A stretch of 63,716 bases of DNA, the filler included, from Reticulomyxa filosa (lineage: Eukaryota; Protista; Foraminifera), in NCBI GenBank assembly GCA_000512085.1. It is 19 parts of 19 records of this genome, joined end to end, with 100 filler letters (N's around TTAATTAATTAA, not from the genome) between each part and the next. Parts side by side here need not be neighbours in the genome. Positions count along the whole stretch, not along the records: positions 31,770 to 32,769 come from ASPP01042965.1; 18 more parts are not named here. One strand, given 5' to 3'. The number at the start of each line of letters is the position of its first letter. The first letter of the stretch is position 1. Shown here piece by piece: positions 1-32,769 of this stretch. Under the pieces are notes generated by a model that had not been told where the DNA came from, did not search any database, and saw nothing but the letters and a program-made list of their open reading frames with translations. Position numbers and translations under genes: made by a program.

Positions 1-665
1 AAGCCAATGGAAACCATTGATTTGGAAATATACAATCCCAATGATTGTATAATATTTTTTAAAGAAGAATAATAAGAAGAGTCAGAATGATCTGAATCAA
101 TATTTTCATCCGATTCAAATTCATCATCATAACTAGATTCATTTTCATCTAAATCAGAGTCAAATAAAATGAAATAATTTTTCTTTTTCCACACACTTTC
201 ATATTTCATAATCCAAATATGTTTATATTCAGTTGGTCCTGTCAATATTTATTCAGAATTCTTTTTTAAATAATATCTGCAAGTCTTGGAGAACCCAAAT
301 ATATATATTTGATTTTACAAAATAGTTAAATACATTTTTGGATTCTCTACGATGTGTAGATATTATTTTAAAAAAGAATTTTGAACAATAAAGACAAAAA
401 TATTTGTTAGAAGATGGTGATAAAATAAAATGTGAAATTTTTGAGAAATAAATATTTCGAGCGCACAATTTTTATGGACCAGTTTTTTTTTCGCATAACA
501 ATATCATTTCAATAAGGGGCTTTTTCTTAAAAAAAAAAAGAAATAATTTTGGAGCAGCAAGAATGATGAACAACAGATTTATGACTTACTGTTTTTATAT
601 GTACTGTTTTTTTTAACAAAAACACTTTCACACTACAAACAGGCGACGACAACAAAGACATTGAC

Positions 666-1109
666 TTGTTGTTGAACTTGAGTGCATTGAAGCTCAGTTC
701 ACAAGACAAGGAACAACAACAACAGCAGAAAGAGTTGAAACAGCAGCAAGAAGAGAAACAGGAACAGGAACGACGAGAAAGAGCGATTCAAAATTATCGA
801 AAAGAAAAAAAAATTCGTCGAGAAACGCTGTTGCGAGAGTGGCAACAGAAACGACAGCAAGAGTTGCAACAACAGCAAAAGCAAGAACAAGAACAAGAAA
901 GGCTGTTGCGAGAATGGCAACAGAAATGCCAGCAAGAGTTGCAACAACAGCAACAGCAACAACAAGAACAAGAAAGACAACGACAACGACAACAACAGCA
1001 ACAACAAGAACAAGAAAGACAACGACAACACAGCAACAACAAGAAAGACAGCGACAACAACAACAAAGACAACAACAAGAAAGACAGCGACAGCAACAAC
1101 AAGAGTTAA
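666..1109 (+). CDS. Low-complexity Q/E/R-rich coiled-coil ORF (possible terminal exon)
   Basis: 147-aa ORF built on CAA/CAG repeats, with the internal repeat LLREWQQK(R/C)QQELQQQQ. No family recognised. Confidence 0.35.
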   Translation: MLLNLSALKLSSQDKEQQQQQKELKQQQEEKQEQERRERAIQNYRKEKKIRRETLLREWQQKRQQELQQQQKQEQEQERLLREWQQKCQQELQQQQQQQQEQERQRQRQQQQQQEQERQRQHSNNKKDSDNNNKDNNKKDSDSNNKS

Positions 1110-1842
1110 TATCTTAAAATATTTTTTTAATTTTATTATTAAATATTTAATTTTATTTTTATATATTTATATTAATATAAATATATATGAAGATGGTTGT
1201 TGTTGTTGTACATCAAATAATTTCCATTGGAATCAATTTTGTTGTTGATAAATTGCACTTTTTCCCATTCCATGACTACTGCCACATTCCATTTTTCATT
1301 GCTTTGAGGATATAACAATGTTGAATGAACACCATTCCAACTCGTATCCAATATTATTCCGATATTGTTTTTGAATGTACTTGATATTCTATTTTCATCC
1401 AAATGTTTATCTACTAAATTTATCAATGCTTTATCACCAGTTGATGACAATGCTGATACATTGTACAAGTGTAAAGTGTAATTGTTCATAGTTGGTTTGT
1501 TGATACACCACACTGTTTGTGATTCGAAGATTTGTTATTATTAGAGTTTACATTCTTTTCCATTCTGCAATGATCTATCCACAAATTTGATCGATCATTC
1601 AAGCATAATGTGCATCCAAATCATGGATATTCATGTTCATCATTTTATATTTACTGCTGCTTGGATTATGAATTCACCACATCTTTGTTGTTGGTTACAA
1701 TACAGTTGTCCATCAAGACTTGACCACTTTTCTGTGCATTTCGATTAATATTTGTTATATATATATATTAATGGATTTAACAATTATGGAACAATCAATG
1801 TTCCAATTATATGTGGATGGAATATCTACAACAATAGCAGTT

Positions 1843-1942: not shown

Positions 1943-2879
1943 AGCTACTTTCCACAAGGCATGGTCTATCCAAAAGCACTTATGCTTTCATAACACAAAC
2001 TACGCACTCATTGACACAAGCAGCTCGCATTGCACACTCTAACAAACTCACATCAATATCCAAATCAAGACGTTGCCCATGGTCTTGTAAAGTTATTTTT
2101 TATTTTATTTTTGTCATTGCAATAATAATAAGATATGTTTTTGTTGTTGTATAGATCAACAATGGAGCAAATGTTTGGACTAACTAGATGGACGGCGCAT
2201 AATATTCGTGGCTGTGTGAATAAGTGGAAAATATCAATAAATGTAATATCTTGTGTTTTTTATTTGTGTTCATCTTGTAAATATATCTTGTGGTATTGCT
2301 TAAATAGGACCACCAGCTGTGATGAAAAGAAAAAAGAAAACGGGGTAGAAACCACCCCGTCTCCGAAAGGAGAAATAAAGGCTTGTTCTATTTATCTTTT
2401 TTTAAAAAATATGTTTAAGTTTTTTGCTGTGTGTTGTGTAACATAGGTTCCCCCGTCCACAATGCCCGTTACAATATATGTCCCATCCCCTTTACACACA
2501 CACAAAAAAAGAAAATCGGGGTTGAAACCTGCCCCCGTATCATCAATGATGCAAAATGGTTTGTGCTGTTTATTTATTTATATACATAGATATTGTTTTG
2601 TTATGTAACGTTGTTTGTTTGTTTGATTAAATAGGATTCCCCCTTCAAAAAAAAAAAGAATATATGTATACTTTATTTTTATTTATTTGTCCCCCCCTAC
2701 AAAAAAAGTATGTTAGTGTCTTTATAGGAAATATGTGCAGATGAATTCCAAATTATAGTTACAAATATTATTTTTTTTTGTATATTATTTAAAAGATTAT
2801 AAAAAGTAACTTTTTTGTGTGCATAGGTCAGTGATCAACAAAACCGTAGCAGTGTATGTGTTTGTATTGAAAGGGAGTT

Positions 2880-3065
2880 GGAAAAAAGGGAAAAATAAAG
2901 AATAAGATGGGAAGAAATGGAATAATAAAAGAAAAAAAAGGGGAAGAAAAAAAATAAATGTAGTAATAAGAAAAAAAAGTACTAAAAAGAAAGGAAAAAA
3001 GAAAAAAAGAAAAAGAAGAAAAAGAAAAAAAAAGAAAAGAACAAAGATGATAAATGAAAAAAAAT
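2880..3065. repeat. A-rich purine low-complexity tract
   Basis: Near-pure A/G run. A similar tract lies at ~37545-37890. Confidence 0.8.
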
Positions 3066-3199
3066 TTAGATTTGAAATAATTAATTTTTTTTTTTATTTG
3101 AAGTGATTATATCCCGAGCGGGATAACAATATAAATTAAGTAAGTTTTTCTCTTTGTGTGTGTTTGTTTAAAAAATGTATGTGTTGTTGAATGTTATAG

Positions 3200-5430
3200 A
3201 ACACGAAGATTGGCAATGTGTTCGTGTGAAAGCATTATATCAAAGACTGTTCGATGTGGCGAATGTATTTAAGTGGATTTGTGAGAAGTGAATATTCAAT
3301 GGACCAAAAAGCAAAGTGGTGGAGTCGCAATTGAAGAAGAAAACATGAAAATATCGCAGCAATGACTTAAACATGGAATGGACTATGTATGATAATCCTG
3401 TTGATTTGTTTGTTTAAAAAAAGGCCAACTGAATCCACATCAAATGATGCTTCTTCACAAATCTCGTGCACGGATTAAACAATATGGATTGACAACGACC
3501 CAATTGATCAGAGCAAGGAAAAAAAACAAAAATAGATCAAACAAAAGACATGGTTGTGTAGCAGAATTATTTTAATGGCGCTCAATTTCTTGCAAACAAT
3601 GAAAGATTTGAAAATGCTGCACAAGAAACACGTGAAAACTTGCGAAATATTGGAATTTGGCAAGCCGACGTTCACTTCGCTGCGAAAACAGTGGCAACGA
3701 ATTACCAATGAACAACTTTGTGATATCCATAACACTTCACGTCAAGTGTCTAATTGGGAAAAAGGTCAAGTTGTTATTGGGTCAACCTATAAATGGTGTG
3801 AGTTTTCATTCTAGACTACAAACAAACTATAGAGCACACTATTTTATATCTGCACACTTGTATATTTAAAAAAGAGAAATATATATATATATCTGTTTTG
3901 TTTCCTTTGTTTGAAGTGTTTCAATTGCTTGTTGACACAACTTGTATTTGACAGATTTTGGAACATTGCCCGATGGAAGATTCCAAATTCCAGCAATAAA
4001 CACAACAATTGTCTGCCAAATTTCCTTCATCCAAAGAATTTTTGGAAAAAAATTCTGGAATTACCCAAAGTAAGAGAATTGAATATGGCAATGGTAATCA
4101 GTGAATTTTAAAACAATCAATGGGGCAGTCACTTTATTTGATGTTGAAAAGCATATTTCGAATTTTCGTGAAATGTTAGTTGCCGCTATTCATGGAGCGG
4201 ATTCTACTACTGGAGAAGATTACCTGCATCTGGTTAGCAATTTATTCATCTCTCGAGCGAATCGTATCAAGTAAATACATGCCTCAAATGTGAACACATC
4301 ATTCATAATAATTAAAGTGGAACCTGATCACTTGCCAACACAATTACAAACAGCAAAGGTCATTAGTAAAAAAAAAAAAAAATATCAAGACAAATGTTTT
4401 ATTGATACGATTGTGAGGATGAATGCTATTCGTAATTTTGCGTATTTCATTTTTGGACAAGCAACTACGTCTGAATCATCTACTAATGCTTTTGGCACCG
4501 AGCAAAAGCAAGCAACAGAACAAATGAAAGTGAGAATCAAGAAAATGGTCAAGCCAGCAATGAAAATAAAAAGCGCTACTTCAAGAATTTCTTTTGGGCC
4601 TAAAAAAGCTGGCAAAATAAGAGACTATTTAATCAAATCCACAAAATCATAAAAGTGGGGAGCATCGACCTGGCGACACTGTGCATGCAGCTACAACCCC
4701 ATAAAACAACGACCCCACATCTTCAAAAAGTAGTGGCTAATACTGAACGTCTTAATGAGCAGTCTGGAGAAAGAACATCCGTGCGAGAAAATGGTTGAAT
4801 GCCTGTGGCCAAAGCGAAACAAGGAAGTATGAGCATCATCGCAGGAACAAGCGACTTTGCGCACTTTTAAACATGGAACAATTTCATATAGTGCGCCTCC
4901 CAATGAAAGCTATTTGATTGGTGTGACAATATCAAGCGCAGTGCCAGCCATGATGACGATGCACGACGACCACAAAACGCAGTCCATGTTCTCATCTATT
5001 CATTGTCAATTACTTCAATACATTGGACTGATGTTGTGTGTGTGTGTGCCAATATTGGATGCCGCTGTTGTTGGTGTGCACGGAAGAGAACTAATGCTGT
5101 TGTGTGGCCATTTATTACAAAAAACAGTAACATCGTGCCAATCGATTGATAATTGAATCGACAACTCAAAAGTGGATCCATTATTTGGCAAATCAAATCA
5201 AAAGTTTGGATATTGGCAATGCATTGGTGGCTTTGGGCCCTGTTTGGGCAATATTTTATGTCAACAGTCGAGCCCCCTCTCTCTTCTATACTCTCTCATC
5301 CCTTATCTCAAAGAAATCGGCGTTGTGGATACGAATGAATTTTTCGGTTATCAAAACCGAATTACTCGAATTCAAAACGTGAAATTGTCTGCCATTGGCA
5401 AGACTGCAAATAAAAAACAATGATAGCTCT
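3200..5430 (+). pseudogene. Decayed large protein-coding gene of unknown family
   Basis: Chain of protein-like + strand ORFs (3554-3814, 3911-4111, 4290-4652, 4857-5156, 5146-5382) broken by stops and frameshifts. Confidence 0.4.
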
Positions 5431-31769: not shown

Positions 31770-32418
31770 GTAATGATAATGATGCAATCATATTCTTTTC
31801 TAAAAATCTTTTACATGATTTACTTATTTTATCCATCTTTTCAATATATCTTTGATGTATTGGCGCTTCATCAATCAAATCATTAGCAGCAATTTGCAAT
31901 TGATCTGGAGAGAATGGATATACGTGGACATTGTTTTGAGTGTAATGAAATTCACAATATTGTCTTTTCGAAAATGTCCAAGCTACTGCGATATGATATT
32001 CCAACCCTTTCCATTTGATTTTTAATGATGACTTTGAATGTTTCAATATTTTTATTTTATCTGTGCAAAGTTCTTTTCTTATTTTGTCGATGTTTTGCTT
32101 AATCCATTTAAAAATGTTGCTACTTTTTTTTTGAAGCGAATAAATATCATCACAATTACCACAAGTTAAATGTTTTTTCAGATGATGTAAGAATACCAAA
32201 TATCCACAAGATACATTAGGAATGATAAGTTGTTTTTGTACACATCCGGATAATATCGCTCCATAAACACGTGAAAATGGATTTTTTTTATCGTAAAACG
32301 ACGTATCTTTGTGCTTGTCCAGTAAACTATTTACAAGATCGTTGTCATGCTTATAATACAATTCACTGGAAGCTGTTCTTTCTTTAAATCTCTCTTCCAA
32401 GAGCACCTGATATGTCAT
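31770..32418 (-). CDS. OAS/cGAS-fold (Pol-beta superfamily) nucleotidyltransferase-like protein with degenerate active site (3' truncated)
   Basis: Intronless ORF from ATG 32418. [28 protein letters not shown] aligns by eye to OAS [45 protein letters not shown] to ALSFVL..GVEFDVLPAF, and NMIASLSL to EFSTCFTE. Confidence 0.6.
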
Positions 32419-32649
32419 CTTAAAAACGAAACGGGAATTTTTTAACAAACAAGTGCTGCTTTCGATTTAAAATTTTAGTATCTGTGACTTACATTATTAC
32501 TTTAAATAAAAAATTCTTTGCAACTATGTGATTAAGTGCTTTATTTGACGAATTTTGCTTTTAATTTTGAAGTAAATTTTTATATTTTCAGTCATTTTTG
32601 TAAAATATCAACAAAAATACTCGAAAAAAATTCCGCATCATTTTTTGAG

Positions 32650-32769
32650 ATGTCAGAGAAAAATTCGACATACCAGCAGTCATTGGAAGATAAATTCAAA
32701 GAAAGGACATCTAGTGGGCTGTATTATGAACTTGCCAACGACCTTGTGAGCAGTGTACTGGACAAACAC
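32650..32769 (+). CDS. Paralog of the OAS-like gene, 5' end only
   Basis: MSEKNSTYQQSLEDKFKERTSSGLYYELANDLVSSVLDKH is clearly homologous to TYQVLLEERFKERTASSELYYKHDNDLVNSLLDKH on the opposite strand. Confidence 0.8.

Follow-up and report, generated by a model that had tools for sequence, protein, structure and literature searches.

Among the immune proteins of eukaryotes that signal through nucleotides, OAS-type CD-NTases are considered the most ancient and the most widespread, and to our knowledge almost nothing is known about their role outside animals. OAS-like members have been reported in eight of twelve eukaryotic supergroups (Culbertson & Levin 2023, PLoS Biol, PMC10732462), and in that survey the foraminifer Reticulomyxa filosa (EP00480) was scored 0 for cGLR, 1 for OAS and 0 for eSMODS. 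Five R. filosa sequences are included in its supplementary trees and alignments, among them EP00480_P025644 (RFI_14454, here P0023) and P024262 (RFI_15844, here P0027). The present work concerns a head-to-head pair of paralogous genes at positions 31770-32769 of a stretch of R. filosa DNA of 63,716 nucleotides, made up of joined parts of assembly GCA_000512085.1; this whole stretch is referred to as the window, and the two genes of the pair as the window copies. The pair very probably goes back to a local inverted duplication within an R. filosa-specific, expanded clade of the OAS superfamily that has lost its catalytic residues, the members of which are likely to be non-catalytic binders.

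Catalytic residues of the gene pair

The piece at 31770-32769 is an entire R. filosa contig of 1,000 bp (the protein cluster of the gene itself maps to a contig of this length) with a G+C content of about 29%, and because it represents the whole contig, both genes are truncated at the contig ends. The features of the pair and of its replaced catalytic residues are as follows:

31770-32418, minus strand: gene for a predicted OAS-fold pseudo-nucleotidyltransferase of the SGC/CGY/H clade, 5' 216 codons, an uninterrupted frame from the ATG at 32418 that is cut by the contig end
32650-32769, plus strand: first 40 codons of the paralogous partner gene, from the ATG at 32650, cut by the contig end
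32419-32649, no strand: divergent intergenic region of 231 bp, the outer ~30 nt on each side being homologous leaders
32242-32250, minus strand: SGC (residues 57-59) in the canonical GGS columns of the hG[GS] motif, with Ser replaced by Cys59 (family alignment and OAS1/OAS2 profile alignment)
32200-32208, minus strand: CGY (residues 71-73) in the canonical DxD columns, with the carboxylates replaced by Cys71 and Tyr73 (family and OAS1/OAS2 alignment)
31993-31995, minus strand: His142 (of EYH, residues 140-142) in the column of the third catalytic Asp (family alignment)

An earlier reading made from the DNA alone (the sequence-only reading) had described two frames diverging from these start codons, 231 bp apart, and both frames were confirmed. 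The minus-strand frame runs without interruption for 216 codons down to the edge at 31770, and the full-length paralogs of its product measure 329-364 aa. The peptide segments on which that reading relied were found where it had placed them, at residues 55-77 (32188-32256), residues 131-147 (31978-32028) and, in the case of ASLSL, residues 212-216.

The same reading had proposed that GS had become GC, that the DxD carboxylates were gone and that the third Asp had become His. All three replacements (C59; C71 and Y73; H142) hold against canonical paralogs from the same genome as well as against OAS1 and OAS2. In the profile alignment the family consensus GGs falls onto the GGS of OAS1/OAS2, and the column of the third Asp holds FD(L/V/I)L in the canonical paralogs and FDVL in OAS1; in a published alignment, the FD of RFI_14454 falls in line with the catalytic Asp that other OAS-like proteins carry (PMC10732462). 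The canonical signature hG[GS] ... [DE]h[DE]h ... h[DE]h is absent from the window protein and was found in three members of the family, with the following motifs:

P0023 (RFI_14454): LGGSLQK, YDGDLVLL, FDLLVAF
P0027 (RFI_15844): GGS, DGD, YDILVAF
P0026: GGS, ESD, FDVLV

The question whether any paralog in the genome has retained GS, DxD and the third Asp can therefore be answered in the affirmative for P0023 and P0027 (GGS/DGD/D). In P0024, P0028, P0029, P0031, P0032, P0034 and P0036 at least one signature residue has been lost, in differing ways. The SGC/CGY/H state is common to 22 proteins in the motif table, and within this catalytically dead clade Cys59 is present in 19 of 20 members, Cys71 also in 19 of 20, and His142 in every member in which the region is visible. 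With the three carboxylates lost, two-metal nucleotidyl transfer should be impossible and the protein would be a pseudo-enzyme; it is thus predicted to be a non-catalytic member of the OAS superfamily by descent, and not an OAS enzyme.

Fold and family membership

The fold was modelled on the full-length paralog P0007 (RFI_32555, 364 aa), which is 64-66% identical to the window protein. AlphaFold (AF2) with a 40-sequence alignment returned a predicted local distance difference test score (pLDDT) of 91.2 and a predicted template modelling score (pTM) of 0.90. An earlier run with 18 close paralogs only had been unusable (pLDDT 52), and the confident model is owed to the divergent paralogs that were added from an exhaustive profile search. 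The model has a bilobal architecture, consisting of an N-terminal spine helix, a Pol-beta-type sheet and an OAS1_C-like helical lobe. The equivalent of GS is found at a strand-to-helix turn (E62-68/H69-72), C82-G83-Y84 opens strand E83-90 (beta2), and the His lies within strand E148-157.

When this model was compared with the PDB by Foldseek, the first match was porcine OAS1 (4rwn_A; E 4e-6, template modelling (TM) scores 0.53/0.55), followed by CdnC, poly(A) polymerases, human OAS1, NF90/NF45, CdnD and OAS3 domain I. A shape search of the ESM Atlas returned OAS1_C clusters (TM 0.63-0.65), and the sole viral match below E 0.001 was a squirrelpox OAS. At the sequence level, the profile of the enlarged family matched human OAS2 (E 3.4e-5) and OAS1 (E 0.17-0.19) among PDB sequences and no other related protein, with alignments running through GGS..DxD and LVKHW..ALELLTVYAWE. 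The OAS/cGAS-type nucleotidyltransferase fold suggested by the sequence-only reading is borne out by the P0007 model, by OAS1 as first Foldseek match and by the OAS2 profile match. A C-terminal domain with a LIRLVK.W-like motif had been predicted as well, and the full-length paralogs indeed carry the C-lobe motifs RLAVLFLKxWQ and SLEIICxHL. On the basis of the model, the proteins of the window family are predicted to keep the complete bilobal OAS-type nucleotidyltransferase fold.

A word search with the window protein identified 17 relatives, all of them hypothetical R. filosa proteins (GCA_000512085.1) with 49-90% identity, and the exhaustive profile search recovered 26 proteins among 1.84 billion representatives, including far more divergent ones. 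Nine of the ten newly found proteins whose source was established come from R. filosa, the exception being P0036, which derives from a TARA Oceans scaffold. The R. filosa origin of the family is stated here for the source-checked matches, which are all but about a dozen of the 26. The gene count is approximate, since in a fragmented assembly several partial proteins may stem from one gene. Searches of PDB sequences with the single sequence and with the close-paralog profile gave noise only, a word search with the canonical-clade alignment recovered merely four known family members, and the Pfam scan of the window protein and the members contained no match to Mab-21 (PF03281).

Some members depart from the rest of the family. 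P0006 (L004:2252-3109) has an aberrant C-terminal half and an early end at 285 aa, and the annotated model of P0014 (L001:6323-7543) is devoid of the LFLKxW block, with a tblastn frame change near L001:6962-6972; both may be either decaying copies or faulty gene models. The window copy on the minus strand carries a loop of its own, KHLTCGNCDDIY at 32140-32175, where the paralogs have (E)KHLDYNNID. Matches to zinc-ribbon and eS31 proteins (E 0.1-0.2) originate from this loop, which is exclusive to the window copy, and were taken as chance.

Descent and selective constraint

In a maximum-likelihood tree (quick IQ-TREE search, eight fragments of less than 180 aa left out), the SGC/CGY/H proteins form one clade with a stem length of 0.91 and a support of 100 in the Shimodaira-Hasegawa-like approximate likelihood ratio test (SH-aLRT), and this clade groups with the canonical R. 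filosa paralogs. A single well-supported clade implies that the substitutions arose once and that the clade expanded afterwards. With a support of 95, the window minus copy groups as sister of P0005, which is the plus copy in a second pair, on contig L009. The members of a pair appear to be each other's closest relatives, and the sequences would fit either a local inverted duplication that created the pair, followed by a duplication of the whole pair, or two contigs that represent deeply diverged alleles.

Intronless open frames were found in all nine copies compared, that is, the window copy and eight paralogs. The ratio of nonsynonymous to synonymous substitution rates (dN/dS, Nei-Gojobori method, NG86) was 0.21-0.33 between the window copy and the eight paralogs and 0.12-0.40 over all 36 pairs, with dS ranging from 0.24 to above 1. 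By region, residues 56-160, which comprise the former active site, are the most constrained (0.14-0.15), and the N-terminal helix has a ratio of 0.30; between the two N-termini of the window pair, over 34 codons, dN is 0.16 and dS 1.26. Loss of the catalytic residues combined with retained purifying selection is what characterizes a pseudo-enzyme, and both are found here, the former in the motif table and the latter in the dN/dS values. The sequence-only reading had spoken of an intact but catalytically dead gene; the uninterrupted frame, the replaced motifs and ratios of 0.12-0.40 rather than near 1 agree with this view, and by the same token the dead clade appears to be a maintained pseudo-enzyme family and not a product of decay.

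The head-to-head arrangement

The N-termini of the two window genes are identical in 24 of 35 residues (BLASTP E 1e-12), and each ATG is preceded by about 30 nt of similar leader (AAAAAATTC..TTTTT.AGATG), upstream of which the similarity ends; the shared N-termini and similar leaders noted from the DNA alone are thus real. As DNA, the 5' ends of the two genes are inverted repeats of each other, 32311-32443 matching 32625-32769 with 74-77% complementarity. The central ~180 bp of the intergenic region are unrepeated within the piece and about 91% conserved in the second pair, and the divergent arrangement is what suggests a promoter role for 32419-32649.

This second pair, on contig L009 (ASPP01042544, 1,081 bp), shows the same head-to-head organization at 91% identity, intergenic region included. 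A third head-to-head pair is present on contig L001 at 534-1460 (minus strand) and 2672-3712 (plus strand), about 1.1 kb apart, together with one solitary copy. On six other family contigs the family gene has no family neighbour. Head-to-head pairing, present on three of the nine family contigs examined (two of the three being copies of each other), recurs but is not the rule.

The counterpart of the window plus copy on L009 (P0005) is a dead-clade protein with SGC(A)/CGY/H, and judging from this 91% identical pair, the window plus copy is probably also of the dead type. The canonical P0023 and P0027 are each the only family gene on their contigs, of 7.2 kb and 5.2 kb respectively. A pair made up of a dead and a live gene, as in the sensor/helper immune pairs to which the locus had been likened, was therefore rejected: P0005 is itself of the SGC/CGY/H type, and the two canonical paralogs examined lie alone.

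The annotated gene model on the window contig (P0001) has a product of 165 aa, corresponding to 76% of the open frame, and looks too short because the 216-codon frame from the ATG at 32418 aligns with the paralogs from the first residues. Compared with the plus copy on L009, the window plus copy has 27 extra nt (nine codons, SEKNSTYQQ) right after the ATG, at 32653-32679 on the plus strand. A short stretch of leader may have been duplicated locally here, as suggested by a direct repeat of 16 nt (32623-32638 and 32656-32671). Scans of 31770-32769 for tRNAs, Rfam families and tandem repeats revealed no tRNA, no Rfam family and no meaningful tandem repeat.

Proposed role and alternative explanations

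With the metal-binding triad gone, the protein would make neither 2'-5' oligoadenylates (2-5A) nor cyclic nucleotides through the two-metal mechanism. Its most likely function is non-catalytic binding in the retained cleft, where the ligand would be a nucleotide, double-stranded nucleic acid or a product akin to 2-5A. The protein could thereby serve alongside the small number of canonical OAS-like paralogs (RFI_14454, RFI_15844) as a sensor, a regulator or a decoy. In such a role it would be comparable to OASL, the inactive domains of OAS2/OAS3, NF45/NF90 and MiD49/51 of animals. Two lysines, one in the GxxQK turn and one in LFLKxW, are retained in the dead clade; by the profile alignment and the OAS1 structures, they correspond to phosphate-contacting lysines of OAS1. 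As both lysines are kept and the cleft region is the most conserved part of the protein, a ligand-binding, non-catalytic role is favoured. An immune role would be suggested solely by membership of the family and by its multigene expansion.

Several points weigh against this proposal. Pfam searches with the window protein, with 18 members and with 25 members found no family at threshold, and the best match, OAS1_C (PF10421), was obtained for one member only at E 0.044. The fold comes from the model of a paralog and not from the truncated window protein, the plus copy shows 40 residues only, so that its dead state is deduced from the 91% identical locus, and the tree is the outcome of a quick IQ-TREE search and not of a finished careful one. 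The clustering of Cys59, Cys71 and His142 in space is presumed from homology. Finally, whereas the fold and the replacement of the catalytic residues are firmly established, the binding of nucleic acid or nucleotide, the link with immunity and any sensing role are putative.

Alternative explanations concern, in part, the reality of the pair and the family to which it is assigned. The contig measures just 1,000 bp and ends inside both genes, as might be expected of a chimeric inverted read, and the sequence-only reading had itself raised the possibility of such a misassembly. However, arms with 74-77% complementarity are not copies of one read, and their divergence of about 24% shows that the pair is not an assembly fold-back; the synonymous divergence between them is high (dS 1.26), and both the junction and the intergenic region recur, 91% identical, on the independent contig L009, which leaves an artefact with next to no credibility. 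It is also very improbable that a highly repetitive genome has here left pseudogenes in decay, or junk repeats, with the open frame as a mere remnant. The fragmented assembly with its many partial family members, as well as the aberrant C-termini of P0006 and P0014, would be in line with decay, but this is largely refuted by the dN/dS of 0.12-0.40 in all 36 comparisons at dS up to above 1, and the eight compared paralog coding regions are uninterrupted and the substituted residues conserved. An assignment to the cGAS/Mab-21 (cGLR) superfamily instead of the OAS superfamily could draw on the language-model features, which comprise Mab-21, OAS, SMODS and DZF clusters only and among which the best Mab-21 cluster (0.91) slightly exceeds OAS3 (0.90). 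Against it, no cGAS or Mab-21 chain is found among the Foldseek and VIA matches listed, in which OAS1/2/3/OASL lead, the only sequence-level PDB matches are OAS2 and OAS1, and published trees score R. filosa as OAS 1 and cGLR 0 (PMC10732462); we regard this assignment as improbable.

Two further explanations accept the family and differ in what its members do. The two-metal OAS site might have been rebuilt into a Cys-Cys-His (+Tyr) centre in one foraminiferal lineage and then have spread to about twenty genes. The new centre could hold structural or regulatory zinc, be sensitive to redox state or provide an alternative form of catalysis. The replacing residues are near invariant and lie where constraint is strongest (omega 0.14-0.15). 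Two Cys and a His are typical of zinc coordination, and by homology the positions of these residues are those that bind Mg2+ and triphosphate in OAS1. If true, the rebuilt centre would be a new ligand- or stress-sensing module on the OAS scaffold and not a mere dead copy, and the protein might cooperate with the small number of canonical OAS-like enzymes that the cell also contains. In P0021 (L001:27-1493, minus strand), the head-to-head partner of P0009, SGH and YGY replace SGC and CGY, with YHI kept, so that His and Tyr occupy the two Cys positions, which argues against an obligatory Cys-Cys-His site. The conservation could equally reflect the packing of a closed, ligand-free cleft, and no Pol-beta-fold transferase is known to use a centre of this kind; a rebuilt centre is consequently considered doubtful. 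MiD49/51 are mitochondrial fission adaptors and NF45/NF90 RNA-binding heterodimers in animals, and by analogy the family could be a housekeeping scaffold unrelated to immunity, the genes of a pair encoding heterodimer partners. This is a serious alternative, though the less likely one: a housekeeping adaptor would seldom exist in about twenty closely related copies, OAS proteins proper account for the nearest structures and for the only matches at sequence level, and pairing is confined to three of nine family contigs, two of them copies of each other. The reading that we prefer is that of an inverted duplication within a catalytically dead OAS-superfamily clade of probable ligand binders.

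Further observations on the family

Canonical-like proteins P0024, P0026, P0028, P0035 and P0036 continue past the OAS fold in a common C-terminal extension (alignment columns ~650-950), which features a block around IEHCFSQ and for which no Pfam match was obtained. Traces of this extension downstream of the annotated ends of P0023 (L011:6596-6712) and P0027 (L012:3406-3975) indicate that these gene models may be truncated.

P0036 (675 aa; GGS/NGD/FD) is the only relative shown to come from outside Reticulomyxa and is located at L006:9241-11268 (TARA_SAMEA2623246 scaffold_14, 18.9 kb) and L007:2184-4211. Its scaffold belongs to a marine metagenome, has a G+C content of 21-27% and contains about 21 short, tightly packed genes, which gave no Pfam match save one weak SPRY. 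The origin of P0036 could be a giant virus or an AT-rich protist.

One sheet of supplementary table S8 scores R. filosa as STING-positive (0 1 0 1 0) (PMC10732462), and the species may hold a bacteria-like STING beside its OAS-like genes.

Comparison with known systems

The sequence-only reading had considered an OAS-like family in this protist to be undescribed. For the canonical R. filosa members this does not apply, as they have been catalogued (PMC10732462), but none of the dead-clade proteins is included in that set, and Reticulomyxa is not mentioned in the main text of that paper (PMC10732462). A literature search for main texts that pair Reticulomyxa with oligoadenylate, or Foraminifera with cGAS, returned none, and as far as searched, the expanded catalytically dead clade itself is undescribed.

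Its closest described relatives are RFI_14454 (P0023) and RFI_15844 (P0027), which belong to the same genome and family and share the C-lobe motifs (profile E 1e-53 to 1e-41, ~28% identity). They differ in having kept GGS, DGD and FD, and the dead clade forms a separate monophyletic branch. Compared with OAS1 (4rwn, 4ig8, 1px5), the dead clade is about 12-13% identical, the Ser of GS and the three catalytic Asp are replaced (C59, C71, Y73, H142), and neither OAS1_C nor NTP_transf_2 (PF01909) is matched in Pfam at threshold. Bacterial CD-NTases of clade C (CdnC, 6u7b) and clade D (CdnD) are active enzymes encoded in operons of cyclic oligonucleotide-based antiphage signalling systems (CBASS), together with an effector and HORMA/Trip13 partners; unlike these, the R. 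filosa loci were not seen to have effector or HORMA/Trip13 neighbours.

Loss of catalysis on this scaffold has precedents. The OAS-like domain of OASL (4xq7), OAS3 domain I (4s3n) and OAS2 domain I (9h1z) are likewise catalytically inactive, but these modules are vertebrate-specific and occur as single domains or fusions (with ubiquitin-like domains in OASL), whereas the dead clade consists of stand-alone proteins in a protist clade of about 20 members with its own conserved Cys/Cys/His substitutions. The DZF pseudo-enzymes NF45/NF90 and the Mab-21-type MiD49/MiD51 also share the Pol-beta/OAS-like fold without catalysis; some of them still bind nucleotides, and they act as dimeric adaptors. 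R. filosa holds an expanded, catalytically rebuilt variant within the known OAS superfamily, and RFI_32555 (dead clade) and RFI_14454 (canonical) are concrete proteins for a first look at OAS biology in Rhizaria. The presence of a few canonical genes and a much larger, maintained dead clade in one genome amounts to a natural experiment on reusing the OAS scaffold for non-catalytic ends, as animals have done independently with OASL, the inactive domains of OAS2/3, NF45/NF90 and MiD49/51.

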